From positions 1-37,761 of the forward strand of contig ADNK01002864.1 in assembly GCA_000320545.1 (NCBI GenBank): a DNA stretch of 37,761 nt, given 5' to 3'. The notes under the pieces were generated by a model. That model was not told the DNA's origin. It saw only the letters and a list, made by a program, of their open reading frames with translations, and searched no databases. Position 1 is the first letter of the stretch; each line of letters starts with the position of its first letter. Shown here one piece after another: positions 13,081 to 37,761 of this stretch. The position numbers and the translations under genes were made by a program. The DNA comes from Bigelowiella natans CCMP2755. Taxonomy: Eukaryota; Protista; Cercozoa.

Positions 13081-13715
13081 TGTATTTTTTTGTGTTGCAT
13101 ATCATACGCATCGTACTCCGACCCATCACTCACTTGTATCACGTGCTGCTCCTCTCTTCCTCCCCCCTCCCCCCACCTTTTCCCCACCTAGCAACCCTGG
13201 CAAAGGGTCCAGCGAGAAGATCATCCCTTCACCCGATAGAGCAAAGGCGGTATGGATCCAAACAAACCACATACATCATCGAATAAAGCCCCATTCCTTG
13301 GTTTTAAAGAGACCGAATCAGAGTGTTTCGGGGCGAGGTTATCGTCGATTCCTCTCGCACAACCCTGCGAACTACGTCCATGACGGCCGTGCAGCGAGGC
13401 GGCGAAATCATCGACGAATTTCCTATGCTGATAGAAGCTCCTTCTTTCGTTTTCCCCCCCGTCCCCAATCCTCTTGTGGTTTATAACACGGCACCCACTC
13501 GACGCATTATGTGCTACTTTACGCAGATGAGAAGACTACACAGGAAGGCTCAGAAGAAAGGGGGTCTACGAGGACGGGCCCTTTCCAGCCCCATCCCCGA
13601 GATGGACGCTACAGGCAAGGGGGGGCGGGTGAAGAAGAGCTTCTTTAGCTTTCTATGCTGTACATCGGAGAAGAACCTCCAGTATGATAGGAACAGCGAC
13701 CCTCCAAACAGATGA
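10730..13715 (+). CDS. Hypothetical multi-exon protein-coding gene, divergent from GBF1; function unknown, start uncertain
   Basis: Chain of short AG..GT-bounded open segments plus longer ORFs 11782-12270 (acidic, low complexity) and 13323-13715 (terminal exon ending ...FLCCTSEKNLQYDRNSDPPNR*). No domain recognised; could be two genes. Confidence 0.45.
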
Positions 13716-14696
13716 TAATAGTCGTCGTTTTTAATAACTATTGTAGGAAATATAGCGGTGGTAGTAGTCTTTTTTTAGTGGTATTCTTGTTAGTTTGCGG
13801 TGATGATGGTGTATAATCGGGTCTTAGTCAATAACTCATGCGTCTCCATCGTGAATGAGTATTATTATATTGTTTTCACGAGTTGGTGAAATATTGAATT
13901 TTGAGACCGAAGCGAAAAACCGAGAATGGTTCTTGCCTGCGACATGTGCGCAGATGCGTATATCACACCAACGAGTGTTACTTTCACTGTTGTCCAAAGT
14001 TAATATGAAAGCGGTATATTATTCACTGTCAGTCGTATCCTAAAAAAAATTTTCCACAATAATAAACTGTATTTTTATTGTTCAATTCATTGTCTTTGTA
14101 TATAGTTTGGGAATCCTCTTCGGAGTGTTTCCATCATCGTGTACAACCATGTGCTGCCGCATTGCATAGAACTACGTGTAGCAATCACGTCATTTGCAAG
14201 TGCATCGTGTGAAATCATGGCAAAATGCTCGAGGAGCCATCACAAACCATTGCATTTAGATGCGTCTCCAGTGTGCCAGCAGCAGACGTAGATCAGCAAA
14301 ATGCTCCACATCATCTAGCCACATGCAGCACGTCTAGTCGTGCATGCCTTCGATCTAGTCAGAAATGATCAGCAGGATTGATCTCGCGATTGATGAATCT
14401 CGTGCACTTCGCGCTACGTGCACTGCCGCGCATGCGTGCACGTTCGCCGAGCTAGCAAACAGCAAGGGACATGCCAGCATGCTGGGATGCCAGCTTCACT
14501 GGCTAGCTAGTGCAGGCCTGCTAGCTTGGCAGTCATCTTGTCATGCATGCTCTTGTGCACAGTGTCTCTGGGATCACATGGCTCATGCATCTTCAATCAT
14601 CAGTGTGACATGCATGCATCAGTTTCGATGATGGACCATGGACCATGACCAAAATCGGCCATTCCAGCACTTGTGGCAATTTTTGAACAAAGCAAA

Positions 14697-15112
14697 TGTC
14701 AGCGGTCTGGCCGCGCCACCCACGATCAAGGAGCTGTCGCAGCATGCGCACGTCCACTCGTGCTGCACGCTGCGCTGCGCACATGCGCATGGAAGTTCTC
14801 AGAACTTCGGGAATCTTCGAGAAGCTTCGAGAATCTTCCAGAAGCTTCGAGAACATTCCGGAAGATTCGAGAATCTTCCAGAATCTTCGAGAGCATTCCG
14901 GAAGCTTCGAGAATCTTCCAGAGAATTCGAGAGAGTTCTGGAAGATTCGAGAATCTTCGCGAATGCGCCGGAACCCAATGCGCACATGCATGCAGCGCAA
15001 GTCACAAGTCATCATCAGAATCCAAACGCACACAGGACCGCGTGTTGACACTTGGTGACATCAGCACAGTCCCGCGCACAAAAGCTAAGCAGCCACCGCA
15101 AGCCCGCTGAAA
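14697..15112 (+). repeat. 5' LTR (416 bp)
   Basis: Starts TGTCAGCGG; matches 20704-21119 except at 15086 and 15108-15109. Confidence 0.95.
14791..14963. promoter_or_regulatory. Array of heat-shock-element-like nGAAn/nTTCn units in the LTR (second copy 20798-20970)
   Basis: About 17 units with 10-bp period TTCnnGAAnn (ttcgagaa, ttccagaa, ttccggaa, ttctggaa), matching the HSF consensus of alternating nGAAn pentamers. Confidence 0.7.
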
Positions 15113-15123
15113 GGTCATGAGCC
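15113..15123 (+). promoter_or_regulatory. Primer-binding site, internal/half tRNA-iMet type
   Basis: GGTCATGAGCC directly after the 5' LTR resembles the GGTTATG(G/A)GCC PBS of Drosophila-copia-like elements, with one TA>CA change. Confidence 0.7.
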
Positions 15124-18100
15124 TCAAGAGGACTTGCCAGAGAACCAACTCAGAAAAGAACCAAGCACCCCCCCCACCCCCCTTCAGCTACATCCTTCCA
15201 GAAGAAGGAACTGAAAGCGACAACAGCATTCCCTCAGCCAATCTTCGGTCAAGCCTCCAAAGCACTGAAAAACAAAGAAAGTGGGAACGAAACAACGTGT
15301 CAGAAAAGCAGACAGACTCCCTTCCAAAAAACTTCACCCTCAAGTGCGATGGTAGCAACTGCAAGCCCCACATGTGCAAGCCAATGTCTGCCTTTGAAGC
15401 AGCGGATTTGGAATCATGCTTCAATGTCAACACAGAAACAGAAGGAAAGGTGACAGAAGTCAATGTGCGCACCGACCCCGCTCACCGACGAGAAGTACTC
15501 AAGCTGTCCCCGGAGCAATTCGATGTCCTCAATCCCAAACCTGAAGGAAGAGGATCACAAGAAAAGACAAACAAAAGAAAGAGAGGAAGATTCTTCCTCA
15601 CTGCCACCCTTCCTGATGAATTCTTCGATCTGCTCGAAGGAAAACCCAAAGACGTAGCAGTCACCTTAGCAGCCTTGCTGGAGAAGTGCGAGCCCACCAA
15701 TCCTGCAGCCGTCAGGAAACTTTGTTCGAAACTGAGTGATGTGAACATGGGTCAGCACAATGGAGACTTCACAAAGTGTCATTCTGACCTTGACTCGACG
15801 ATCAGAAGACTTCGGGCACAGCACGAAGGATGCTCCGACAACCAAGCGCTCACCACTCTGCTTCGAGGACTTGCACCTAGCGAAAAATGCGAGACTGTAG
15901 TTGCAGTCATCAACAACAAGAAAGATGTCACCTTCGACTCTGCAGTGGACATGATGCGTTCCCACATGAACTCCCGATCGCTCGATGACGGGCAGAGACC
16001 TTCAAAGAAACATGCAGGACACACCAGTGCAGAACACAAACACGTGAAGATGCACGATGGCTTGGAGAAAAGGCTGAACGAACTCACAGGTCAGCTGAAT
16101 GCCCACAAGAGGAAATTCAAAAAGGGAAAGAACAGACACAACAGCGAAGCACATCAAGACAATTCCAAGAAGCAAAAGAGAGAAGACCATTTCTTGAACT
16201 CAAAGAAAAGAACAAAATGCCATTGCTGTGGCAAGAAAGGACATTGGGAAAAGGAATGCAGAAACAAGATGAGAGATGAAGGCAAGCAGAACAAAGGAAA
16301 ACACTGTTCCTTCATTGATCATGGCTCCCCTTCCCAAAGACCCTCTTGCATTGACAAGATGGCACGCGACAATTCTCACCTGCAAACGCTGAAGTGCAAC
16401 CATGAGCCTTTGATCCTTCTCGACAGCGGAGCCAACAACCACTTCTTCTGCGACCGCGACTTCTTCAACGAGTTGAAACCCATTCAACCACGATGCATGG
16501 AAGTTGGCAAAGATGGGACAGGATTCTTTGTGAATCATGCAGGCGACGTCAAACTAACTGCTGAAAACAAGCAAGGAAAGATGCACAAAATTGTTCTGCA
16601 AGGAGCTTTGTGCTCTGAAGAAGCTGCAGGCAATGTGATCTCTCTGAACAGACTAGTTGAGAGTGGCAGCGAGCACAAAGGAACAAAACAAGGAATGAGC
16701 ATTGCCGCCAACGGAGAGGAATGCGCGTTCGGAGACTTTCAAGACGACGGCCTGTTTCATTTGAGATGCAAACAAATGAACAAAAGTGCAAAGACACAAA
16801 GATTTGAATCCTGCCCTGTGAAGCAGCCATCTCCAATCAAGCACGCACATGACATCCCAGGGCACATCGCAACGGATGAGACAAGAGACGCCTGTGCAGT
16901 TGCAGAAGGTTTGCCCTGTTCCAAGACGATGAAGATGCCAAAGAAGATCTTTTGCAAGGCCTGTGATGTGGCCAAAACAAAAAGATCTCCGATCTTTGAT
17001 CTGAGCGCCCAAGAAAGGATGAAACAGCATGGGAACAAAGCAAAGATTGAGAACGATGCTGTCAAAAAGAAACAAAAATTTGCACCTGTCATCCACAAGA
17101 AAAACCGGATGTGGAATGGAATTCACTCTGATGCAAAGACCATGCATGACAGCATGGATGGTTGCAAGCATTTCGTGATGTTCGCACATGAAGGAACAAG
17201 GTGGGTTGCCTTGGAGCTCTTGAGAAAGAAAAGCGAAGTTGCGCAGAAAACCACACAGTTCACAAAGCACATCAGAAAGCTTCCAGGTTGTGGAAGCATG
17301 GACGAATTCAGATCGGATGGTGGAGGTGAGTGTGTGAGCGCAAAGCCACACAGCTGGCTCACCTCCGAAGGAATGAAATGGGTTCCTAGCACCGCCCGAA
17401 CACCTGAGCAAAATGGAATGTCCGAGCGTCACATGCAGACTGTCATGGCGAAAACAAGAGCCATGTCAGAACATGCACGCTTGCCGGTCGGATGCTGGTC
17501 CTGCGCAGCTCAGACTGCAGCATGTCTCCACAACGTCACCTCACATCGCAGCACACCTGGCAGAAAAACGCCCAAAGAACTGCTGCACCATGAGCAACCA
17601 AATCTGAAGAATCCAACTACCTGGGGATGCATCGGAGCAAACCACATCGACAAGGAACTCCGACCTGCAGGTGGTGTGGGTGCTGGAGGTGAACACGTGC
17701 GCATGTTGGGATGTGACGATGGATTTGGCACTTTTCTCGTCGCCACGAAGACGCTGAAAATCAAAAGAGTCCGTGCAACTGAATGGTGCCACACAGTGTT
17801 CAAGTTTCCTTCGCTGAAGAGAAACAAAGTTGGTGATTCGGCTTTGGCGCACCTTCATCCAGAAGGTCCTGCCGACGCGGACGCCCCCGAACCATCCAGT
17901 GCAGCTGACGAGCCGCCAGAGGATGGTGGGCCTGAAACAAAAGCAAAAAGTGAGCCTCGAAGGTCGAATGGAGAAAACAGGGGAGTGCCTGGTGTTCGTT
18001 GCGGAATGCTTGGTAGCTGTCACGACCGCCTGATGAATGTGAAAGCTCCATCAGCACATGAGATCGAGGACCTTCCTGAGACGCATGACGATGCAATCAC

Positions 18101-19739
18101 AGGAGATGATGAGAAGCATTGGACACCTTCCACGGAAGAGGAACTGCACCAGCTTCGAAAACTTGGAACGTTTGCGCTGGCAGTGCGACCTGAGGATGCA
18201 AGTTCAGTTGCATCTGAATGGGCATTCAAGAAGAAAATGAATGCAGACCATGCCATTCGGTGTGAGTCAAGGCTGGTCGCGCGAGGGTTCACGCAGATCC
18301 CGGGAGAAGACTTCTTCTTCTCTTGTTCCCCGACGTTGTCCCTGAACAGTTTTCGGATGATGTCAGCCATGGCATCTGTCCTCAAGCTGAAACTGCACGG
18401 GATGGATGCACTTGCAGCTTTCCTGACTGGAAAGATGGACTGCAAAGTGCACATGGAAATGCCCAAAGGGTGGAAGCCGAAGACACCTGAAGAAATCCGG
18501 CCACACAACAGTGGCCTTCCACTAGCCCTGCTGGCAAATGAAAGCATTTGTGGGCTGACACAAGCAAGTGCAATGTTCAGCCTCACCTTGCTCGAGCATC
18601 TCAACGCCATTGGCTTCGTCCAGCTTTGCTCCGATCCTTGCCCAATGACAATGCACAGACAAGGAAGAATCATCACATTGTCATGTTTCGTGGATGACGT
18701 GTGCATGGCACATCAAGATGAGAAAGACCTGGACTTTGTCATGAAGCGAATGGGCGACAAGTTTGAGTTTCGCGATGAAGGCGAGCCAAAGAAAACACTG
18801 GGCATGAGAGTTGGCAGCGACAATGAGGGAAACTGTTGGATGTCGCAGGAAGATCACCTCACCAGACTCGCCCAGAAGTGTGACATCACGCCTACGAAAA
18901 GAGCAAAAACACCAATGATGACAGGATCAAAGTTGGACGAATGCGAGGAACGTGAAAAAGTGGATCAGAAGGCATGCAGATCCATCACAGGAGCAGCAAT
19001 GTGTGCAGCGGTGGCCACCAGGCCAGACATCTGCTGCACTCCATCTCGTCTAGCTTCCCACAGTCAAGATCCTGGAACTGTGCACTGCATCGCTGCAGTG
19101 CGCTCACTGCAACACCTGGTCAACACAAAGGACAAAAGAATCACCTTCAAAGCAGCGTCCAAACCTGAGCTTGAAGCCCACGTCGATGCTTCCTGGAAGA
19201 CCTGCAAGAAAACGGGTGAATCACACTCAGGACATTTCACATCGTCAAGCAACGCACCTGTTGTCTGGAAGAGCAACAAGCAAAAGGTCGTTGCCATGTC
19301 CAGTGGCGAGGCTGAGCACATGGCATCATCAGATGCATGCAGAGAGTCAGTGCATGTCACTCAGTTGCCACAGGAGTTCAAGATGAAAATGCCGAAACCT
19401 GCACCTGTGCATTGTGACTCTCAAGCAGCTGTCTCCATTGCAGCCAAGCCTGGATTCACACAGAAAGGCAAGAACACGAGGATGGAATGTCACAATGTTC
19501 GTGACAACCATCAAACCAAGCAGATCTGCACAAACAAAATGCCTGGGGAGGACAATCCCGCTGATGCACTTGCTGAGGCTCTGCCAGGACCTAGCAACAA
19601 GAAACACTGTGATTTCTTGTTCCCTGCATCACACAGAAAAAAACTGACCACAATGCTGCAAGGCACCAAAAAAAGAAAAATGACTGCAAAGGCTCTGCCT
19701 TGCAAGCTCCCTCGCCTTGTCGGCCCCACGTCCATCTAG
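15117..19739 (+). pseudogene. Copia Gag-Pol polyprotein ORF (1540 aa); frame open but saturated with missense changes, probably non-functional
   Basis: Zinc knuckle CHCCGKKGHWEKEC (16218-16259); protease LLDSGA (~16416); integrase HHCC, IHSD, RSDGGGE and TPEQNGMSER; RT SRLVARGFTQ and FVDD (18687); RNase H VDASW, SSGEAE, CDSQAA and NPADAL. Conserved Tyr positions read Cys or His throughout. Confidence 0.93.
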
Positions 19740-20694
19740 AAACCTGCAACACGTGAACACATGGGCTGCAAGGTTTCAATGGCACACATCTTCATGTGTG
19801 TGTGCCTTTCCTTGCGCATCTTGCTGTGGACCATGTGCACAGCTCCGATGGGGGCGAATGTGAATTGCGCCATGGATCATGCAATTGCACAGTGTCTGTC
19901 TTCCAGACACTGCACAATCATGGGGGCGAACATGGAACAAAGACAGGATGCCCACAAAACAAGAACAAGATGCAAGGCCACGTGCCACGAGACACCTGCG
20001 AAATTGAAAACAAGTGAGACAGAAAAAAACTGCCTTCCCTGTGTGGAGGCATGGAAGAACAATGTCGCTGTGACCAGAGTGTGATGCCTTCAGACCCACG
20101 AAGGCAGACTGCATTCTCTTCGGCATTCCTTCTCGATCTGGCATGGCTGCAACCCAGCCAGCCAACAGTGTTTGGAGCCCAGCCCGCAATTTCGTCTCTC
20201 AGGGAAGAGCTCTGTTGGGGGACGTGGACGTGCACGTAGCTCGCCTCATCACAAGAGGTGGGGCAAGGTGAAGAGTTGAAAGCACGATCGATCGAAGTTC
20301 CCAAACTTGGGGACCTGACCATGGGAAACCAGATCGGTGTTCCAGAATGTTCCAGAATGTTCCAGAATGTTTTCTGGAAGCACGTGAGGGATTCCAGATT
20401 TTTTTTTTTTCTCTGGAAGCACACTGGTGTCGTTTGAAAAAATCACTTTTTGGACAAGTCCCAGTTCGTGCCGAAATCATGGCACCTTGCCCAGTTGCAA
20501 GCCTGGGAATTTTGTGCCTCTGCACAGAGTTTCAGGCGTCTGGTGGTGCGATGTTTGGTCGGCAAAATTTTGCCAACCATTCGGACTCCGAAACCTTTGG
20601 GAATGGCGTCCATGTGCAGCACCGTGCAAAAGTTCTGTCACCATGGCAGAAATGGCACGTGCACATCAGCACTCTGATCGTGGTCACCACGTCC

Positions 20695-20703
20695 ATGGGG
20701 GCG
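20695..20703 (+). other. Polypurine-tract-like sequence
   Basis: ATGGGGGCG immediately 5' of the 3' LTR. Confidence 0.55.
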
Positions 20704-21119
20704 TGTCAGCGGTCTGGCCGCGCCACCCACGATCAAGGAGCTGTCGCAGCATGCGCACGTCCACTCGTGCTGCACGCTGCGCTGCGCACATGCGCATGGA
20801 AGTTCTCAGAACTTCGGGAATCTTCGAGAAGCTTCGAGAATCTTCCAGAAGCTTCGAGAACATTCCGGAAGATTCGAGAATCTTCCAGAATCTTCGAGAG
20901 CATTCCGGAAGCTTCGAGAATCTTCCAGAGAATTCGAGAGAGTTCTGGAAGATTCGAGAATCTTCGCGAATGCGCCGGAACCCAATGCGCACATGCATGC
21001 AGCGCAAGTCACAAGTCATCATCAGAATCCAAACGCACACAGGACCGCGTGTTGACACTTGGTGACATCAGCACAGTCCCGCGCACAAAAGCCAAGCAGC
21101 CACCGCAAGCCCGCCAAAA
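20704..21119 (+). repeat. 3' LTR (416 bp)
   Basis: Direct repeat of 14697-15112 at offset 6007, preceded by the G-rich tract ATGGGGGCG. Confidence 0.95.
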
Positions 21120-21959
21120 GCAAGTGCAGAAACACTTCATGCAAACACAAATGCAAACGTGCACTGGTGTCTTTTGCAAGCAAAAACATGAAAACAGACG
21201 AGATGGTGCACAGGTGAAAGACCCTGCGTGCAGAAGCTTTTGTTCGTCCCGCAGCAACGTGCAAGGCAATCGTCGTGCCACAAGTTTGCACAAGATTTGA
21301 CAAGTCATGCAATGCTGCACTCCAGACCAATGTTTTGTCCCTGGTTCATCCACACATCTGTCCACATGCGACGAAATCTTTGGTCTTCAGAGAAAGTGTC
21401 GCGAATCCGCACCATCAATCCAAACGTCACCTGTTTCCCGAAATGCAAATCAAATCACTCTCGTGGACGCTGATTTGGGGTCCGCGTGTGGTTTTCGTAG
21501 TCACCCGCAAGCAAATGAACCACACACACCTTGCAAATCGTTCAGTTTCATTTGACAGATCCCAACTTCACCCAAGTGCTTCACACGAAGAGAGTGCAAA
21601 CTGGCATCGTCTTCTGACACAATTCACAACGTTGAAGTCAAGCAGTTCAAGAGAAGGCACCTGAAACTGTTGGAAAGGGGCTTCTAGTTTCACTCTGTCA
21701 ATGATTGACTTCACGTAGTCGCTCCTCAAGGCCCGAATCAGCACTTGAAGGAGAGTGACTGGGCAGTCTGTTCGTCAGCAGTGGCCACGATTGAGCAAGA
21801 AACAATGAAACAATGATGAAAAACCACATTTCCAAAGTGCAGCAAGACACTTGCAGTGTGCAAAATGCAGTGCCTCGAACTGATTTCAGTGAGGACTGTG
21901 ACTAGCAGATCAACTGGCCAGGTTGCCAAAATGGCACGACTTGGTCATTGAACAAGTTT

Positions 21960-22330
21960 GAGAAGCAATGACACTGGTGACAAAATTCTGACGGCGCAAG
22001 ACGTCCACTCTGAGCAAAAACTTCCTGAAGGCCATGTCCACACGATGATCTACGATTGGATCATCTGAGGGTGCCCCCAGCAGAATTTTGGTTTTGGAGG
22101 AGTCTGGAGCGTCAAAGAATGAAGAGTGGAGGGAAGAAGCTGAACCCAGAACTGATCTCATGTGCGAGAGAAGCTTGCATCTCTCTGCATTCAAGTGAGT
22201 GCAATGATGGATGAGGTGGTTGACACTTTGAACAACTTCAGCATTGCAAAGAGGACACACCGAGAAAGAGGGGGGCAAGTTGCAAATTTTGGCCCTGTGC
22301 TCCTCAGTTTCGCAAGTCCCAGCACGGTGA
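21960..22330 (-). mobile_element. 5'-truncated non-LTR retrotransposon (LINE) fragment, ORF2 C-terminal CCHC region
   Basis: Translation RAGT...CPLCNAEVVQSVNHLIHHCTHLNAER...KILLG...FL fits the C-x2-C-x8-9-H-x4-C motif at the end of LINE ORF2. The fragment is also TpA-depleted. Confidence 0.7.
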
Positions 22331-22806
22331 GAGTTTTGACACGTGCTCATCATCAACCCACGAGGACAAAATTGGAGAAACGCATTCCATTTTTCAAGTT
22401 TCATGAACGAAAAAATCAAAAACAATGCAAAGCGAAGGGCAAACATCAATGCACAAGTGCCATTGAATGTCCCACTTCAGACCATCGAGATTTCTGGGAA
22501 AGTCGACTTTTCCTCTCGTTGAATCGATTAAAGGCAAAAGTCATGTCGCGCGTCCAAAATCCCATCTATTTTTACCTCAATGACACAGTTGGCTTTGGAG
22601 ATGGTAACCTCGCACGCTTTGGGAAAGGATTTTTTGCGTGTTTTTTTCGGATTTTACTTTGTTGTTGTTGTCGTAGGCCAAGAATTCCAGGGTTTTCGTC
22701 ATAGGGAAACCGTCAATCACAGAAAGGGCATAATCAAAACCGCCCCCCCTTGTGAAGAACTAGGCTCGGCACAGACTTCCAGACGCTCTCCGGACATTGA
22801 GACAGG

Positions 22807-24800
22807 ATGGAAAAGAAAATTTTCAAAAATTCCCGTTCTGGCGAACGCATGTTATTTGAATCCTCTTCAAGTAGTGACCAAAAGGATGTTTGCTGTAGAA
22901 TGGATGTCTGCATCTCAGAGACTCAAGCCCTCACATTGGCGACTAGCTCGCCGAGAATGACTGCTTCATGTCAAATTGATGCAAGGACGACAGGTGATGA
23001 TCGAGTCCCTGAAACGGCCGCCGTCGAATCACAGTGTGAAATTCAGCACATCGATCAAGGTCAGCACAAGGCATCTGAACAAAAGAGGGAAGCATATGAG
23101 CTGGATCAGAAGGAGACATACGTGCGTTCACAACATCTACCAAGCAATGAAACGACGATGCGTCGTTATGATGCTATCATGACACTCGATGCAAGCGAAT
23201 TTGAGGAAGTCAAGACCATGGGAACATTTCTCTTCCTAGAAGTTGAGAATCCACAAAACGAGGTTATAACATTGAACTCTGTAGAGGCAAACACTCTGCT
23301 TCGCGTATCTAAAAATAAAGACAAAAGCAAGAGAGATGGTTGTGGAAATTCTACTACGATACAAATGAGCAATAACGAAAAGACAATTCAGGCTAAGGTT
23401 GAAATATCAAAAAAAGGATCTGACAGCTTGGTACTTCGAAACAAAACCAAAGATAAACAAGACAAACCCAACGATAGCCAAAACAACTCCAAAACAACCC
23501 AAAAAAAACCAACTGTATACATCCACGGATGCGTACGTATGTCGGCGAGCAGTTTATCGGGGACTAAATTCAAAATTATCAAAGTGAATCTTTGGAGTAA
23601 ACATGGCATACCATGCGACGGCAAAATATACAGAAATCAACTATATCCTTCTCCCAAGGTACTTGAACTTATTCTCTTCTTAGATGTATTCTAAAGGCAT
23701 CTCAATATTTAATATTCATATTATACTATCTTTGTTTTAGATAAATAATTACGACGAAGGAAAGAAATTTCCGTCTTGCCAAACTAGTGGAGGAAAGCGA
23801 GAAAGAGGGAAGAAAATAAGAGGCGAGTCAACAGCATCATTCATCCGGCAGCCGATGAAGAAATGGTTAAGAAGAGAGAGGAAGAATAAAGTTTATGTAA
23901 AAATCGCTGCTTCAATTTCGAAAGATATGCTAGATGTATGCAAGCAAGGTCACATCTCAAGTATCGACCGTATGGATTACATAAAAACAAACATAAGCAC
24001 AATGCTGAAGGAAGAGATGAAATATACCGTTGAAGAAGTTTACACAAGCTTCCCAGATTCAATAAAAAATCAAAACGAAGGTGCGGTTGTATCGAGGGAT
24101 GCGGAATGGACAATATGTTTTAGATTCCCTATACCATATTACCACGATGATGGAACCCCGAACTTTGAGAACCATGCGAAGTGCTCTAGAATGTGCTTGG
24201 GTGCATTCCAAAACGTTTTTCATGAGGATGCTATATACATGGGTACAGAACCAGGGAGTATCATCGTACGCTTCAAAATCGAAGCCAAACAAGTCCTCAA
24301 ATTAATTCAAAAGCGGCTGGCCTTCCGAGCATTCTTCATCAAGAATAGCAAAATCAAGAAAAGCGACGGTACAAACTAAACTATACTAACATTACGATAT
24401 TCTCAAATCAATGTTTTACTTTCATGAACAGGGAAAGGACACGACGAGGGATTGGTGCCTACGATAAGCATATGGAATCAACGCACCGCATCTCTGCAGA
24501 CCAGAGAGAGCATTCCGAAAGATATTAAAATTCAACTTGCATGTTCAGATAAAACGACAGCGGATAATATCATCAGAAGCATCAAGGAGAACGAAGAAGT
24601 GTGGAGAAAATTCTCGATTAAGGCATTTCTATAGTACATATATATATATTATATCAGTTTTACGAAACCTCACATGACGATAATTTAATGTTGCGCATCC
24701 ACATAGGCTGTTTTCATCGAAGGAAATAAAAAGAATATCTCCAATAAAAGAGAAAATAGAGAAACGGTATGTTGATTATAAGTGTTTAAACTTATATATG

Positions 24801-24850
<50 letters not shown>

Positions 24851-27790
24851 TTCATGACTATATGAATATAAATATGAACATATATATTGATATACATACA
24901 TGTAATTAATATATATAATATTCACACACGTTCACATATAAAAATAAATATGTGTATATATGTGTTTAGAATCTACACACATATAAACGCATATATTACA
25001 TAAATGTAAGAATATATGTAAAATATAAATATATTATATATTATATATGTACAATGGCGAAGATAACGACTGTGATAGAGAAATATACCGGGGAAGAAAA
25101 AGAGAAATATTATAAGTTAAGGGCTCCTATTTTTTCCTGAGCTCAGACTCGATCGCAACCCACGATGTCGATTGCTTACACATGCTACCTTGATGTCGTT
25201 CGAAAATCATCATCTCATCATTGAGCTGTTTTGAATACGAAATGATATTGGTATACACTTGTGTGATATTATATTATGTGTTTTTGCATTACGCAGTTTC
25301 CTCTCCATGCTGCTGCAAAAAATGGGAATCTAGCCTTGCTATGCTCCCTCTTGGAAAAAAAAATCAGAATCGAGGAAAAGGACGACCAGGGTTGGACACC
25401 TCTCCACCATGCTGCAAGCAATGGCAATGTAGATATCGTACAGTTCCTCGTGGAAGAAATGAATGCAAATGTACTCGCCGAAGATCATTGTCAAAAGACG
25501 CCTTCAGATGTTGCCTTTGGCAAAGCCAAAAAATATCTGCTGTATGGAGAAACGGTACACAGCCGCCGCTATTGATATTATCTAGAAGTGCCTAGATCAA
25601 TCTATTGCTCGATTTATACATTTTGGTCTATGAGTAGCAGAATGTATTCTTACATGAATATGAGTAATGAACACGATCATTCATGTATTTCCATCGAAAA
25701 GTGACATTCTTATAGAATGAGGTTACTTTACATGTATCATGAGGGTTTGCGTTTGAATATTGTATTGTAGCCTCTACATATTGCTGCTGAGTATGGGAGG
25801 GTTGACGATTTGCGTCGTATCATTGAGAGTAAGGCTGATCTTGAGGCCAAGGAGTACAGAGGATGGACAGCGCTTCACTGTGCTGCTAATGGAAATCACA
25901 TGGATGCTGTGCGTTGTCTCGTCGAGAATGGAGCCGAAGTTTCGGCTGAAAGTAACTTCGGATCAACACCATTTGATCGCGCAACGGATGAGGACATTAT
26001 GAAGTATCTGGTAAAATAATTGAAAGCTGATATCTTGCAAACAGTGCGATGATTTGTTTCACTTCACACGGTTGATGTGATATTTTGAATCATCCTGTCA
26101 CTGTTTTAGTTCTCACCTTTATTCTATTGGTCGGGTTAGTCATAAGTATGCTTATTCATTTGTTGGAAACAATGCGTGAGGATAGTTGTCTACAAATTAA
26201 AGTGAATCGAGGGTTTTGAAAATTGAAGAGCTGCATTTTTTATAGGACAAAATGGATCCCCTAAAACCTGCCCTTAGATCCGAAAACATTGAAGAGGTCT
26301 TCAGTCTCGTCAAAGACAAGACCCTCCGCATATATTATAAGATGAGAGAACGAGCCCTTCACTTGGGGGTTGAAAAGGGGCATTTGGATTTGGTGAAATG
26401 TCTGATAGAGGCAAAGACAAGTGTAAACACAAAGAATATTGAGGGAAGTTCCGCCTTGCACGTTGCATGTTCAAATGGCAACATGGACATGTCAAGATAC
26501 CTCATAGAGGAGGCCAAAGCAAACGTAGACGGGGAGGATAAATATGGAAATACTGCTCTACTTCTTGCCTTTAAATATGGCCAGTATGAACTAGCTAAAT
26601 ACCTTGTGGAGGAGGGCAAAGCTAATGTAGATATAAAGGACAATTATGGAAATACAGCTTTGCATCTTGCCTTTAAACATGGCCAGTATGAACTAGCTAA
26701 ATACCTTATGGAGGAGGGCAAAGCTAATGTAGATATAAAGGACAATGATGGAAATACAGCTTTGCATCTTGCCTTTAAATATGGCCAGTATGAACTAGCA
26801 AAATACCTTGTGGAGGAGGGTAAAGCTAATGTGGAGGCAAAAAACAATCAAGGCAATACTGCCCTACATCTAGCTGGCAATCGTGATGTAGCTAAATACC
26901 TTGTGGAGGAGGTCAAAGCTAACGTGGAGGCAAAAAACGATCAAGGCAATACTGCCCTACACCAAGCTGGCAATCATGATGTAGCTAAATATCTAGTGGA
27001 GGAGGCCAAAGCTAACGTGGAGGCCAAAAACAAAGAAGCCAATACTGCCCTACACATAGCCTGTCGATATGACAATCCTTATGTAGCTAAATATCTAGTG
27101 AAGAAGGCCAAAGCTAATGTAGAGGCCAAAAACAATCAAGGCGATACTGCCCTACACCTAGTCTGTCGATGGTACACACATGATGCAGCTAAATATCTAG
27201 TGGAGGAGGGCAAAGCTAATGTAGAGGCCAAAAACAATGAAAGCAATACTGCCCTACACCTAGCCTGTCAATGTTACAAACATGATACAGCTAAGTATCT
27301 AGTGGAGGAGGCCAATGCTGATGTAGATATAAAGGACAATTATGGAAATACAGCTTTGCATCTTGCCTTTAAACATGGCCAGTATGAACTAGCTAAATAC
27401 CTTATGGAGGAGGTCGAAGCTAATGTAGATATAAAGGACAATGATGGAAATACAGCTTTGCATCTTGCCTTTAAACATAGCCAGTATGAACTAGCTAAAT
27501 ACCTTGTGGAGGAGGGCAAAGCTAATGTAGATATAAAGGACAATGATGGCAATACAGCTTTGCATCTTGTCTTTAAACATGGCCAGTATGAACTAGCAAA
27601 ATACCTTGTGGAGGAGGCCAAAGCTAATGTGGAGGCAAAAAACAATCAAGGCAATACTGCCCTACACCTAGCCTATCTATGTAATGAACCTGGTGCAGCT
27701 AAATATCTAGTGGAGGAGGCCAATGCTAATGTGGAGGCGAGAAACAATGAGGGAAAGAAACCTTTTGCCTCAGCATTGCATCGTATGATG
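22807..27790 (+). CDS. Multi-exon ankyrin-repeat protein (copy A) with an uncharacterised N-terminal region; 3' exon(s) not resolved
   Basis: Phase-compatible exons 22807-23658, 23741-24368, 24432-24622 (GC donor), 24707-24766, 25297-25554, 25771-26010, 26246-27790. The last three encode ankyrin repeats (GWTPLHHAA, GWTALHCAA, and about 14 GNTALHLA...LVEEGKANV units). Confidence 0.85.
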
Positions 27791-28979: not shown

Positions 28980-30834
28980 AGCGCTAGAGCGAATGATTAC
29001 GCATGCTAATCCAATTGTTCGATTTTGTGTTGCTGCTAGCAGACAAATGTGAAATCAGCATGCCATTGCGTAGCTTCAAATTTGATCTTGATCAATGCTA
29101 ACTGCGCATGGCGCCAACGATGGGTGTAAATGTGCGAAATTTCACGCATTGCACATTGCTAGATTGAGGCTTAAACTTGAGATGTGCGCACAGCTCCGAT
29201 CGAGAGCCAGAGAGGCATTGGTGTCCACTCTCTAGACTCTGCGATGCCAGAATGTTCGCTACAGTTTGCGCGTCTGTTTGTCAAGACATCGAAATGCTGA
29301 ACATTTCTACTTCACTAGTTCACAGCTAGCTACTAGCTAGACATCATCATCTCTAGCTAGCTAGATCTAAGCGTGGGGTTTCGATTTGTCATCATCATCG
29401 CACTCGTGTGGATTGTGCAACAGCAACCACACTAGCATGTTGGCCTAGCATGTCTAGATGTGTTTCATCATCAAGAAATGTGGCGACACAAGTCGCTTGA
29501 CGCATGCATGTGCTAGTGTGGGTGCTTTGTGCCGCATTCTGATCTAGTGATCGCTGGATCTTGGCATGTGCATCTTCAAGCTTCAATGTTTGACAGCAGT
29601 CATGCTAGCATGGGTGCATGCTGTGAAGAAGAGCTTCTTTAGCTTTCTGTGCTGTGCATCGGAGAAGAACCTCCAGTATGATAGAAACAGCGGCCCTCCA
29701 AACAGATGATAATAGTCGTCGTTTTTAATAACTATTGTAGGAAGTATCGCGGTGGTAGTAGTTTTTTTTTAGTGGTATTCTTGTTAGTTTGCGGTGATGA
29801 TGGTGCATAATCGGGTCTTAGTCAACAATTGATGCATCTCAATCGTGGATATCGTGGATGAGTATTATTATATTATTTTCCCCAATTGGTGAAATGTTGA
29901 ATTTCGAGACCGAAGCGAAAAACCGAGAATGTTTCTTGACTGAGACATGTGCGCAGATGCGTACATCACACCGACGAGTTTTGCTTTCATTGTCATCCAA
30001 ATTTAATGGGAAATTGGCATAATTTTCACGGTCAATCGCATTCCAAAAGCCTTTGTTTTAAATTTTCTACAATTATAAACTTTATTTTTGTTGTTCAATT
30101 TTTTGTCTTTGTGTGTAGCTTGGGGGGGATGGAAATCCTCTTCGGAGTGTTTCTCATTCTATCATCAGTGCATGATCATGTCCTGCCGTACTTGCGTAGT
30201 CTAGTAGTGCATAGAACTACGTATAGTCTTTAGTTCAGACTTCGGAAATTGAAGTGAAAGCGGCAATAGAATGTGTCAAATGTGGTCAGACAACGCATGC
30301 ATTCATGCACACATGTATGCACGTGCCTGCAAACATCACATAATCAAATTGCATCTTTTGCATGAAGTGCATCGTGTGGAATTAGGCAAAATGATCAAGG
30401 AGTCATCACAAGCTAGCAAGCCATTCTAGCATTGCATTAAGATGCATCTCCAGCAACAGACGGATGATAGACATGCAATGTGTTGTGTGCTGATCAGCAA
30501 AATGCTCCACATCATCTAGTCATGTGTAGCGCGCGTCTAGCGTGCATCTTCGATCAAGTTAGACATGACCAACAGGATCAATCATGATTGATGAATCTCG
30601 TGTGCTTTGCGCCACACGGTCGCGCACACGCACGTTCGCCGAGCTAGTGAGCAGCAAGCTAGCAAGGGGGCATGCTAGGATTGCCAGCTTCACTAGCTAG
30701 CTAGTGTAGGCTCTAGGGCTTGCTAGCTTGGCAATCAACAAGTCATGCATGCTCTCGTGCGCGGTGTCTCTGGACTTATACATCTTCAATCATCAACATG
30801 CATGCATTAGTTTTCAATTAACCATGCTAGCATG
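28980..30834. other. Cluster of X-CTAG-X micro-insertions (CTAG between short direct repeats)
   Basis: 17 perfect cases found by eye (listed in findings); several are absent at the paralogous positions in 14240-14650. Confidence 0.85.
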
Positions 30835-31092
30835 AGTAAAGGCTATTTGTAATAATTTTTTAAACAAAGCAAATGTGGAAATATTTCATGCAAACACACA
30901 AATGCAAAAGTGCACAGGTGTCATTTGTCAGCACAAATGTAAAAACAGACGAGAGTGAAAGACCCTAGAAGCTTCGTCCCGCAGCAAGGCAATCGTCGTG
31001 CCACAAGATTTGTCATGTAATACAGCCGTCTATCATTAGACTAATGTTTTGTCCCTGGTGCATCCGCACACCTATCCATATCTAAGTGCAGA

Positions 31093-32812: not shown

Positions 32813-35800
32813 ATGACGATAGATCAAAGTGGAGAAACTGACTCCAATGGTTTTGCTGAAATTGGACATTTGGATCCACATCATAGACTCACTGAGCCCC
32901 TTCACTGCTTGATCAATTCTCATGAAGACCATTCCATTGGTGGGAGCTTCATGAATGGCAACTTGCAAGTACATGCACAGGATGATGAGGGGACGGGTGA
33001 ATCCAAGGCCCGACCAGAAGTAACTTACGACGCCAATCTGGCTAGTGACCAAAAGGAAATTGTTCACGGTGGAATGGATGTCTGCATCTCAGAGACTCAA
33101 GCCCTCACATTGGCGACTAGCTCGCCGAGAATGACTGCTTCATGTCAAATTGATGCAAGGACGACAGGTGATGATCGAGTCCCTGAAACGGCCGCCGTCG
33201 AATCACAGTGTGAAATTCAGCACATCGATCAAGGTCAGCACAAGGCATCTGAACAAAAGAGGGAAGCATATGAGCTAGATCAGAAGGAGACATATGGATA
33301 CGTGCGTTCACAACATCTGCCAAGCAATGAAACGACGATGTGTCGTTATGATGCTATCATGACACTCGATGAAAGTGAATTTGAGGAAGTCAAGACCATG
33401 GGAACATTTCTCTTACTAAAAGTTAAGAATTCACAGAACGAGGTTATAACATTGAGTTCTGTAGAGGCAAACACTCTGCTTCGCGTATCTGGAAATGAGG
33501 ACAAAAGCAAGAGATTTAGTTGTGGAAATTCTACTACGATACAAATGAGCGATGCCCAAAATACAATTAAGGTTGAGGTTAAAATATCAAAAATTAAAGG
33601 ATATAAAAGCTTGATATTCCTAAACAAAATCAAATATAACCAAGACAAATCCAACGATAGCCAAACCAACTCCAAAAAAACCCAAAAAAAACCAACTGTA
33701 TACATCCACGGATGCGTACGTATGTCGGCGAGCAGTTTATCGGGGACTAAATTCAAAATTATCAAAGTGAATCTTTGGAGTAAACATGGCATACCATGCG
33801 ACGGCAAAATGTACAGAAATCAACTACATCCTTCTCCCAAGGTACTTGAACTTATTCTGTTCTTTGATGTATTCTAAAGGTATCTCAACATTTGATGTTC
33901 ATATTGTACTATCTTTATTTTAGATAAATGATGACGATAGAGAACAGAGAAGGCCGCCTTGTCAAGCTATTGGAGAAAAACAAGAAAGAAGGAAGAAAAT
34001 AAGAGGCGAGTCAACAGCATCATTCATCCGCCAGCCGATGAAGAAATTGTCAACAAGTGGGAGGAAGAAAAATGTTTGTGTAAAAATCGAAGCTTCAATC
34101 TCAAGAGATATGCTACATGTATGCATGCAAGATCACATCTCAGGTATCGACCGTATGGATTACATCAAACAAAAAATAAACAAATTGTTGACGAAAAAGC
34201 TTGAAGAGATGAAATATACCGTTGATGATGTTTACACAAGCTTCCAAGAAATGGAATCTGTCTCTTCGATAAAAAATCAAAACGAAGGTGCGGTTGTATC
34301 GAGGGATGCGGAATGGACAATGCGTTTTAGATTCCCTATACCATATTACGACGATGATGGAATAACCCCGAAATTTAAGGACCATCTCTAGAATGTGCTT
34401 GGGTGCATTCCAAAACGTTTTTCATGAGCATGCTACATACAAGGGTACAGAACCAGGAAGTATCATCGTAAGCTTCAAAATCGAAGCCTATCAAGTCATC
34501 AATTTAATTCAAAAGCGGATGGCCTTCCGAGCATTCTTCATCGAGAATAGCGAAATCCAGAAAGAGCGCGGTACAAACTATGCTAACACTATGATATTCT
34601 CAAATCAATATTTTACTTTCATGAACAGGTAAAGAACACGACGAGGGATTGGTGCCTACGATAAGCATATGGAATCAACGGACCGCAACTTTGCAGACCA
34701 GAGAAAGCTTGCCAAAAGATATCAAAATTCAACTTACATGTCCAAATCAAAAGACAGCAAGCAGCATCATCAGAAGCATCAAGGAGAACGAAGGAGTGTG
34801 GAGCAACTTCTCGATAAAGGCATTTCTATAGTACATATATGTATATATATATATATATATATATACATATTATGTCAGTTTTACGAAATCTCACATAGCG
34901 ATGATTTAATATTGCTGATCCACATAGGCTGTTTTTATTGATGGAAATAAAAAGAATATCTCCAATAAAAGAGAAAACAGAGAAAGGGCATGTTGATTAT
35001 AAGTGTTTAAACTTATATATGTATGTATATATATACATATATATATATATATACACATATATCAGTTGATGACTACATGAATACAAATATGAACATGTAT
35101 ATTGATATACATACATGTAATTGATACATGTGTATATATATATATATATAATATTCACACACGTTCACATGTGAAAATAAATATGTGTACATATGTGTTT
35201 AGAATCTATACACATATAAACGCATATATTACACAAATGTAAGAATACATGTAAAATATAAATATATTACACATTGTATATGTACAATGGCGAAGATAAC
35301 GACTGTGATAGAGAAATATACCGGGGAAGAAAAAGAGAAATATTACAAGTCAAGGGCTCCTATTTTTTCCTGAGCTCAGACTCGATCGCAACCCACGACG
35401 TCGATTGCTTCCACATGCTACCTTGATGTCGTTAGAAAATCAGCATCTCATCGTTGAGCTGTTTTGAATACGAAATGATATTGGTGTACACTTGTGTGAA
35501 ATTCTATTATGCGTTTTTGCATTACGCAGTTTCCTCTCCATGCTGCTGCAAAAAATGGGAATCTAGCCTTGCTACGCTCCCTCTTGGAAAAAAAACTCAA
35601 CATCGAGGAAAAGGACGACCAGGGTTGGACACCTCTCCACCATGCTGCAAGCAATGGCAATGTAGACATCGTACAGTTTCTCGTGGAGGAAATGAATGCA
35701 AATGTACTCGCCGAAGATAATTGTCAAAAGACGCCTTCAGATGTTGCCTTTGGCAACGCCAAAAATTATCTGCTGCATGGAGAAACGGTACACAGCCGCC

Positions 35801-37761
35801 GCCATTGATGTCATCTAGAAGTGCCTAGATCAATCCATTGCTCGATTTATGCATTTGGATCTATGAGTAGCATGATGTATTCTCATATGAACATGAGTAA
35901 TGAACACGATCATTCATGCATTTCCATCGAAAAGTGACATTCTTGTAGAATGAGGTCACTTTACATGTGTCATGAGGGTTTGCGTTTAACATTGTATTGT
36001 AGCCTCTACACATTGCTGCTGAGCATGGGAGGGTTGACGAGATGCGTCGTCTCATTAAGACTAAGGCTGATCTTGAGGTCAAAGAGCACAGAGGATGGAC
36101 GGCGCTTCACTGTGCTGCTAGAGAAAGTCACATGGATGCTGTGCGTTGCCTCGTCGAGTGTGGAGCCGAAGTTTCGGCTAAAAGTAAACACGGATCAACA
36201 CCATTTGATGTCGCATACGATGAGGACATTGTGAAGTATCTGGTAAAATGACTAAAGCTGACATCTTGCAAGCAGAGCCATGATTTGTTCAATTTGACAC
36301 TGTTGACGTGACGTGATTTTTTGAAACATCCTGTCACTGTTTTAGTTCTCACCTTCATTGCATTGGTCGGGTTAGTCATAAGTCTGCTGATTCACTTTTT
36401 GGAAACAATGCGTGAAGATAGTTGTCCACAAATCAAAGTGAATCGAGGGTTTTGAAAATTGAAGAGCTGCATTTTTCATGGGACAAAATGGATCCCTTAA
36501 AATCTGCCCTTAAATCCGAAAACGTTGAAGAGCTCTTCAGTCTCGTCAAAGACAAGCCCCTCCGCATAGATTGTCAGAACAAAGAACGAGCCCTTCACTT
36601 GGGGGTTGAAAAGGGGCATTTGGATTTGGTGAAATGTTTGACAGAGGCAAAGACAAGCATGAACACAAAGAACATTGAGGGAAGTTGCGCCTTGCACGTT
36701 GCATGTTCAAATGGCAACATGGACATGTCAAGATACCTCATAGAGGAGGCCAAAGCAAACGTAGACGGGGAGGATAAACATGGAAATACTGCTCTACTTC
36801 TTGCCTTTAAACATCGCCAGTGTGAACTAGCTAAATGCCTTGCGGGGGGGGGCAAAGCTAATGTAGATGCAAAGTGCAATGAAGGCAATACAGCTTTGCA
36901 TCTTGCCGTCAAACATGGCCAGTGTGAACTAGCTAAATACCTTGTGGAGGAGGTCAAAGCTAATGTAGATGCAAAGGACGACAATTATGGAAACACAGTT
37001 TTGCATCTTGCTTGTCAAAATGGCCAGTGTGAACAAGCTAAATGCCTTGTGGAGGAGGCCAAAGCTAATGTAGATGTGAAGGACAATTGTGGAAATACAG
37101 CTTTGCATCTTGCCTTCAAACATGGCCAGTATGAACTAGCAAAATACCTTGTGGAGAAGGCCAAAGCTAATGTGGAGGCAAAAACCAAAGAAGACGATAC
37201 TGCTCTACACATAGCCTGTATATGTGGCAATATTGATGCAGCTAAACATCTAGTGGAGGAGGCCAAAGCTAACGTGGAGGCAAAAACCAAAGAAGGCAAT
37301 GCTGCCCTACACATAGCCTGTCGATATGACAATCGTGATGTAGTTAAACATCTAGTGAAGGAGGCCAAAGCTAACGTGGAGGCAAAAACCAAAGAAGGCA
37401 ATACTGCCCTACACATAGCCTGTCGATATGACAATCGTGATGTAGTTAAATGTCTAGTGAAGGAGGCCAAAGCTAACGTGGAGGCAAAAACCAAAGGAAG
37501 GCAATACTGCCCTACACATAGCCTGTCGATATGACAATCGTGATGAAGTTGAACATCTAGTGGAAGGAGGTCAAAGCTAATGGTGGAGGCAAAAACCAAA
37601 GAAGGGCAATACTGCCCTACACATAACTTGTCCCTATGACAATCTCGATGTACTCAAATGTCTAGTGTCTGATTCAATTTCTAATGTGGAGGCAAAAACC
37701 AAAGAAAGAAATACTACCCTACACATAGCCAGTCAATATGACAATCGTGATGTAGTTGAAT
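32813..37761 (+). pseudogene. Ankyrin-repeat gene copy B, pseudogene
   Basis: Collinear with copy A. Frame disruptions near 34060 and 34385-34392, acceptor TATAG>CATGG (36477-36481), donor GT>GC (34988), many Y>C/H changes, and further indels after 37495. Confidence 0.85.

Follow-up and report, generated by a model that had tools for sequence, protein, structure and literature searches.

A Ty1/copia retrotransposon of Bigelowiella natans stripped of TpA by hypermutation of both strands of integrated chromosomal DNA

The sequence described here, hereafter the window, is a 37,761-nucleotide (nt) stretch of Bigelowiella natans CCMP2755 (contig ADNK01002864.1, positions 1–37,761 of the forward strand, assembly GCA_000320545.1). 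It contains a Ty1/copia retrotransposon in which ~93% of the TpA dinucleotides (TA) have been converted to TpG (TG) or CpA (CA). The change hit integrated chromosomal DNA, on both strands. The phenomenon, a regional TpA-specific A:T>G:C mutator of eukaryotic DNA that runs in the direction opposite to the repeat-induced point mutation (RIP) of fungi, has already been described in a preprint of 2026, and the locus is very probably a saturated example of the hypermutation reported there for B. natans (Mettrop et al., bioRxiv 2026, 10.64898/2026.01.13.699255). Four features of the locus are not in the main text of the preprint: the proof that mutation followed integration, the spill-over into the flanks, the sparing of CTAG and the presence of untouched sister copies. 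The locus is thus a natural experiment that narrows the mechanism.

The element lies at the core of a TA-depleted island, whose features and those of related sequences are collected in Table 1. Outside the island, the observed/expected ratio (o/e) of TA in the window is 0.78. When calculated over 1-kb intervals, it is 0.02–0.07 in each interval from ~14.5 to 22 kb and mostly 0.6–1.2 elsewhere, while the o/e of CA+TG rises up to 1.4–1.9 across the depleted stretch. The element itself (14697–21119) retains 19 TA, with 370 expected. The left edge of the island is graded over 14180–14522, TA being dense up to 14179, sparse at 14257–14522 and then absent until 15086, and the right edge is sharp, with TA dense again from 22529. 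Partial depletion is also found at 31.5–33 kb (o/e 0.2–0.3) and 35.5–36.5 kb (o/e 0.46–0.48). The copia element is delimited by long terminal repeats (LTRs) and a 5-bp target-site duplication, both confirmed by five intact sister copies. The window also contains a diverged segmental duplication, in which 13629–14696 plus 21117–21367 corresponds to 29623–31081, and 22872–27323 corresponds to 33043–37582; the first-named members are called A and the others B. In paralogue B the insertion site is still present in its empty state, at ~30866–30876.

Table 1. Coordinates of the TA-depleted island, the copia element, the flanks and related sequences (window positions unless another sequence is named)
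Feature	Position	Strand	Remarks
TpA-depleted island	14180..22529	.	34 TA vs ~500 (499.8) expected, o/e 0.07
Left flank, host DNA	14180..14696	.	only other genomic copy is paralogue B in the window
Target-site duplication, left copy GCAAA	14692..14696	+	5 bp
5' LTR, 416 nt, TGTCAG...AAAA	14697..15112	+	3 ancestral TA sites now TA, CA, TG
gag-pol frame, hypermutated	15117..19739	+	RVT_2 and Pol_BBD matches; stop is TAG in CTAG context
3' LTR	20704..21119	+	same 3 ancestral TA sites now CA, CA, CA
Target-site duplication, right copy GCAAG	21120..21124	+	one A>G at an ApT
Right flank	21125..22529	.	5 TA in 1.4 kb; holds ~530-bp high-copy repeat
Paralogue B of left flank	29623..30876	+	keeps many TA lost in A; itself mildly depleted; empty site
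Paralogue B of ankyrin unit 22872-27323	33043..37582	+	TG/CA at 100 sites where A has TA
Island of copy L002, at least 16 kb	L013:3000-10000 (C485:22000-29000) plus L002		holds a second copia-like element with gag, zinc knuckle and pre-integrase domains

The direction of the change is established by the other members of the family. The genome contains ~20 full-length copies with 91–94% identity, 12 of which were sampled and compared pairwise. Ten of the 12 have 287–294 TA in the region of the open reading frame (ORF; o/e 0.85), and two are stripped: the window copy, with 17 TA in this region, and copy L002 (contig C485), with 28. The window copy differs from a normal copy, L003, at 396 positions over 6394 aligned nt, and 316 of these differences are TA>TG (183) or TA>CA (133). 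Seen from the 341 TA sites of L003, 316 are TG or CA in the window copy, 18 are kept as TA and three are CG. The counts are the same when the window copy is set against the other normal copies with a clean alignment across the element. Pairs of normal copies, by comparison, show 22–66 differences with a balanced spectrum and keep 97–99% of their TA. Among the residual 80 differences from L003, 45 are A>G or T>C at non-TA sites, 18 of them at ApT, which is a weak secondary target of the process.

If no mutation had taken place, the island would have to represent a lineage natively free of TA, through selection or codon bias, or an artefact of assembly or sequencing. The LTRs of all copies are in fact natively TA-poor (o/e 0.10–0.17), as such a reading would have it, but the TA content of the sister copies is normal, their ORF encodes 74 Tyr, and the domain scores fall in the window copy, as described below. 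The bases themselves are also supported. Read support was taken from Logan contigs, in which the stretch is partly covered by 20 DNA runs from 15 studies; single-copy-depth contigs of runs X1 (2025) and X13 (2021), which belong to two independent studies, show no differences over 13782–14724 and over copy-specific pieces of the ORF. We give an explanation without mutation practically no weight.

Mutation affected DNA and took place after integration. In normal copies each LTR carries exactly three TA, all close to its 3' end. The 5' and 3' LTRs of the window copy differ at 3 nt, all of them at two of these ancestral TA sites (TA versus CA and TG versus CA), and the background divergence between them is zero. 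Because LTRs are identical at integration, the different resolution of the same TA sites means that mutation followed integration and acted independently on each LTR. The host DNA of the left flank is mutated as well: over 14200–14696, the comparison with paralogue B reveals 15 TA that are missing from A alone, 10 that are missing from both paralogues with different outcomes and five that survive in both. The discordant LTRs and the mutated left flank together exclude a natively TA-free lineage, and they likewise exclude editing before integration.

Such editing of the RNA or cDNA by an ADAR-, ADAT- or APOBEC-like enzyme, later fixed by reverse transcription, would draw on the RNA stage of a retroelement and on the preference of ADAR and tRNA deaminases for a 5' U. 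The A>G product and this preference are indeed shared with ADAR hyper-editing. ADAR, however, prefers a G on the 3' side, puts up with an A on the 5' side and has RNA as its substrate, whereas here chromosomal DNA is changed, a 5' T is near-obligatory and a 3' G is disfavoured. APOBEC3 offers another parallel, being a deaminase-type hypermutator with a proposed role in retroelement defence. It attacks C on the minus-strand cDNA before integration, which leaves one-strand G>A changes and both LTRs alike; the locus, in contrast, shows A:T>G:C changes on both strands after integration, and G>A or C>T accounts for only 14 of the 396 differences from L003. In addition to the discordance between the LTRs and the mutation of flank DNA outside the element, the strands were hit about equally (TG:CA 183:133 in the window copy and 142:151 in L002) and the mutations of this kind arise in situ in mutation-accumulation lines (Mettrop et al. 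2026). Editing of an RNA or cDNA intermediate is therefore extremely improbable.

The consequences for the encoded protein are severe. An earlier note, made from the sequence alone, had pointed to the depletion of the copia ORF (~17 TA) and to a single Tyr in its 1540 residues, and both are borne out. The ORF at 15117–19739 is open over 1540 amino acids with one Tyr, and 73 of the 74 Tyr of the normal copy are replaced, 40 by Cys and 33 by His. Five Tyr>Cys or Tyr>His replacements that had been proposed against conserved copia motifs are confirmed by comparison with a natural sister copy (GGGEY>GGGEC, RYK>RCE, IYGL>ICGL, AYVDA>AHVDA and AEY>AEH). Lys>Glu, which had been ascribed to the loss of TA spanning codon boundaries, occurs 23 times and Ile>Met 27 times; in total, differences from the normal copy affect 228 of 1471 codons. 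The RVT_2 profile score drops from 154 bits in the normal copy to 112 bits in the window copy, and two weak matches seen in the normal copy, to rve (29.6 bits, just under the Pfam cut-off) and to gag (28.4 bits), are lost. The description of the frame as a 1540-residue copia ORF is correct as regards the open frame, but not for its beginning: codon 8 is a stop in the normal copies and reads Gln in the window copy through TA>CA, so the first ~70 codons are not common to them, and two 1-nt indels (15167 and 15325) shift codons 17–70. The frame of the window copy is open only because TA loss creates no stops and erases TAA and TAG, and a dead element thus still resembles a long open gene.

The distribution of the outcomes along the element gives information on how the changes were made. 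TG and CA are interspersed as in a shuffled series (runs z=+1.9), so that they do not stem from a single strand-processive event. The double change TA>CG is rare (three of 341 sites), since a single hit removes the palindrome and with it the target on the opposite strand. Of the 281 sites shared by the window copy and L002, 168 have the same outcome and 40% differ, with no clustering, so that the two copies were largely mutated independently. With 60% concordance, no clustering and a context-based expectation that was too noisy, a shared history of the two would be slight at most. A strand or transcription bias was rejected, as the excess of TG over CA in the window copy (183:133, p=0.006) is inconsistent with the ratio in L002 (142:151).

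With the window copy and L002 pooled, retention of TA is 71% at CTAG, 41% at GTAG, 25% at TTAG, 10% at CTAA and CTAC, and 0–6% in the remaining contexts. In the same pooled copies, GTAG is retained far more frequently than CTAC, its reverse complement (9/22 versus 7/70, p=0.002), which indicates a strand asymmetry relative to the orientation of the element. CTAG sparing gives the process a biochemical fingerprint by which candidate enzymes can be judged.

These properties can be compared with those of the process described by Mettrop et al. (2026), in which TpA>TpG/CpA hypermutation arises de novo in B. natans mutation-accumulation lines. Of 302 new point mutations in these lines, 231 were located in two regions, one an integrated nucleocytoplasmic large DNA virus (NCLDV) and the other a virophage. 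All but one of the 231 were A>G or T>C, and those were without exception at TpA. Only some lines were affected, with ~6e-7 mutations per site per generation. The authors also listed 324 TpA-poor coding sequences enriched in reverse transcriptase and DDE domains, together with 124 depleted clusters, and proposed adenine deamination by an ADAT2 homologue. The species is the same, and so are the exclusive A:T>G:C change, at TpA only and with TpG or CpA as the product depending on the strand, the regional action on nuclear chromosomal DNA and the clusters depleted in TpA and enriched in CpA+TpG. At the locus studied here, A>G and T>C account for almost all changes (316 TA conversions and 45 others among the 396 differences from L003), and they are concentrated at TpA (316 of 341 sites converted, with 45 off-target); the element is saturated, which leaves few targets in it. 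The DNA is integrated and nuclear and the region is bounded, as seen from the LTR discordance, the mutated flank and the defined edges. The target is of foreign origin, a copia element, and another island contains copia-type gag and pre-integrase domains, but unique flank DNA and an ankyrin paralogue are hit too. The direct evidence in the preprint concerns NCLDV and virophage inserts that are partly depleted, whereas here a single young retrotransposon copy is 93% converted, and unique host DNA in the flank and an ankyrin paralogue of host type are affected as well. The words LTR, copia, retrotransposon, flank, CTAG and trinucleotide are all absent from that main text, and a full-text literature search returned this preprint as the only paper on TpA hypermutation. 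The earlier note knew of no described system with such a signature; Mettrop et al. describe exactly this one.

The numbers of the preprint translate into 1.1e-5 changes per TpA per generation, at which 93% conversion would take ~2.4e5 generations. Over this time, the LTR pair should acquire only ~0.07 background changes and none is seen, which is consistent with such a timescale. The copia element inserted first, making the 5-bp target duplication; a process acting on chromosomal DNA then turned 93% of its TpA into TpG or CpA, with outcomes mixed site by site, within a bounded domain of ~8.3 kb that takes in ~0.5 kb of unique host DNA to the left of the element and 1.4 kb to its right. CTAG was left largely untouched and GTAG and TTAG partly so. 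Many independent hits would have accumulated over many generations.

The earlier note had regarded the process as an "inverse RIP", in which repeats are recognised as such by homology and then mutated. This process and fungal RIP both act regionally at the DNA level, produce transitions only, kill transposons and leak into neighbouring DNA; moreover, the targets in the window are transposable elements (TEs) and a segmental duplication, and some TA is lost in both paralogues A and B. However, RIP is a premeiotic, duplication-triggered C>T change, mainly CpA>TpA, that creates TA and stops, while here TA is destroyed and stops are erased, the opposite direction being polarised by the ten normal sister copies. 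Those ten of 12, with 91–94% identity and 0–1 substitutions between their LTRs, are as repeated and as young as the window copy and remain untouched; neither age nor repetition as such is the trigger. The left flank exists in two diverged copies only and was hit asymmetrically, and the main 186-kb target in the preprint is single-copy (10.64898/2026.01.13.699255). A homology trigger is accordingly very unlikely, and the repeat-induced part of the earlier proposal is abandoned. Its other part stands, namely a two-stranded conversion of TpA to TpG/CpA at the DNA level that RIP, APOBEC and one-strand ADAR editing do not fit: the sister copies are rich in TA and Tyr, the spectrum is 80% TpA-specific and two-stranded, the annotated islands are of TE type and the bases are supported. 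The equally young, intact sisters suggest instead that the process would be targeted by locus or chromatin domain, and not by sequence homology or age.

As for the chemical step, we lean towards enzymatic deamination of adenine to hypoxanthine within 5'-TA-3' on either strand. Adenine deaminases with an obligatory 5' U or T exist. In TadA and ADAT2/ADAT3 the target adenine always follows a U (U33-A34), although the natural substrate of these enzymes is a tRNA loop, and amphioxus ADAT2 is reported to act on DNA (PMC10354150). The same regional process might also act on thymine, through a modified or oxidised T (5-hydroxymethyluracil- or 5-formyluracil-like) that mispairs with G or through error-prone repair at a TpA-specific nick. 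Because TpA is self-complementary, TA>TG on one strand is [T]A>[C]A on the other, so the spectrum fits a thymine target equally well, and the searches revealed no expanded or unusual deaminase family. The existence of adenine deaminases with the required 5' neighbour speaks against it, as does, weakly, the lack of a genome match to the Tet_JBP profile, for which control genomes were silent too. We consider a thymine target a minority possibility; to our knowledge, no T-directed mutator with such a signature has been described.

Profile searches of the six-frame-translated genome for candidate enzymes identified the same six CDA-fold loci with each of two profiles, and a single A_deamin gene, which has no dsRNA-binding domain in the exon examined. 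The profiles Tet_JBP, OTT_1508, NAD1 and DddA-like gave no genome matches, with control genomes equally silent. A more speculative proposal, which we hold only tentatively, is a mutator aimed by position, in a domain defined by chromatin or small RNA whose edges extend over host DNA, and not by repetition or foreign origin, with a natural adenine or thymine editor of TpA distinct from the housekeeping ADAT2/3. If so, the sparing of CTAG could reflect the four-base footprint of the enzyme or a protective modification of CTAG. We know of no natural TpA-specific A:T>G:C editor of chromosomal DNA.

Several observations weigh against the adenine-deaminase and position-targeted reading. The six CDA-type loci and one A_deamin gene amount to no visible expansion of deaminases, such as the earlier note had thought worth seeking. 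ADAT2/3 naturally accept UAG-type anticodon loops, so that the sparing of CTAG and other TAG contexts is not predicted for such enzymes. The palindromic nature of TpA makes A>G after T indistinguishable from T>C before A. The concordance of 60%, and not 50%, between the window copy and L002 indicates some site-specific strand preference or a slight shared history. Finally, several intact sister copies directly adjoin TA-depleted islands.

Beyond the element, the reach of the process was followed in the flanks, the paralogues and other islands. The right flank had been thought to contain a fragment of a long interspersed nuclear element (LINE), but no LINE-type domain was found in it; it contains instead a ~530-bp repeat (21799–22327), present in hundreds of genomic copies at 82–95% identity, with no protein-domain match and TA-poor in two further copies (L031 and L018). 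The region 21325–22900 is only 43–53% identical to paralogue B and cannot be aligned with it. In the ankyrin unit, the reverse of the change given in Table 1 (A changed where B has TA) is found at 22 sites, and none of 16 CTAG sites is changed in B. The loss of TA across ankyrin paralogue B varies regionally from ~10% to 50%, and its sequence suggests that the same process has run to ~30% completion in a gene of host type. The spill-over into unique DNA and into this paralogue puts host genes near targets at risk.

In 200 kb around the other copies, a sample biased to TE neighbourhoods, TA o/e per 500 bp is bimodal, with 12–14% of the intervals below 0.15–0.25, and island lengths range from 1.5 kb to >7 kb. 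The island of L002 extends over at least 16 kb and includes the second, different copia-like element of Table 1, which is equally TA-free. Within the island of the window, stop-type triplets on both strands number 5 for TAA, 49 for TAG and 366 for TGA. As TA loss makes no stop and erases TAA and TAG, long ORFs are numerous on both strands of the island, and 14593–22704 contains many spurious ones (152–317 amino acids) with no Pfam matches. Gene predictions within such islands are suspect, and spurious ORFs of this type probably inflate the gene predictions of B. natans.

Some further observations concern the LTRs and the paralogues. The native TA poverty of the LTRs corresponds, in unmutated young copies, to 2–3 TA in 356–416 nt, with their ORFs at o/e 0.85; an example is L005:1081–1496 (in the orientation of the window, L005 being reversed in its contig). 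CA/TG enrichment is weak in these LTRs. Older independent LTR hits were considered and discarded, as TG/CA-discordant dinucleotides between LTR subfamilies numbered one, not above other double differences. The comparison of 29623–30875 with 13629–14696 shows short insertions found only in B, several of the form X-CTAG-X, such as the 8-bp GGCTCTAG beside GGCT, and 16-bp double insertion events are also present there. No connection between the sparing of CTAG and these micro-insertions was found, since the mutated copia carries none relative to the normal copy.

In two chromatin immunoprecipitation sequencing (ChIP-seq) runs of 2026 with 38-nt reads, X23 and X24, which bear the species label of the DNA runs covering the stretch and whose antibody is not on record, the element is covered 50–350x and the flanks 2–5x, with reads of the sister copies piling up on the element. 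The C>T and G>A "variants" in these reads are the TA of the sister copies, and the unique flank shows no clear enrichment in them. An open frame on the minus strand at L024:4016–4984, in a 5.5-kb TA-depleted island, has a sub-threshold match to DndB (21 bits, cut-off 29.1), a DNA-sulfur-modification-associated protein, and could represent a decayed bacterial- or viral-type gene. Lastly, 200 bp of the ankyrin unit (22925–23125) are 99% identical to paralogue B, the paralogues being otherwise 86–93% identical, and may represent a gene-conversion tract.

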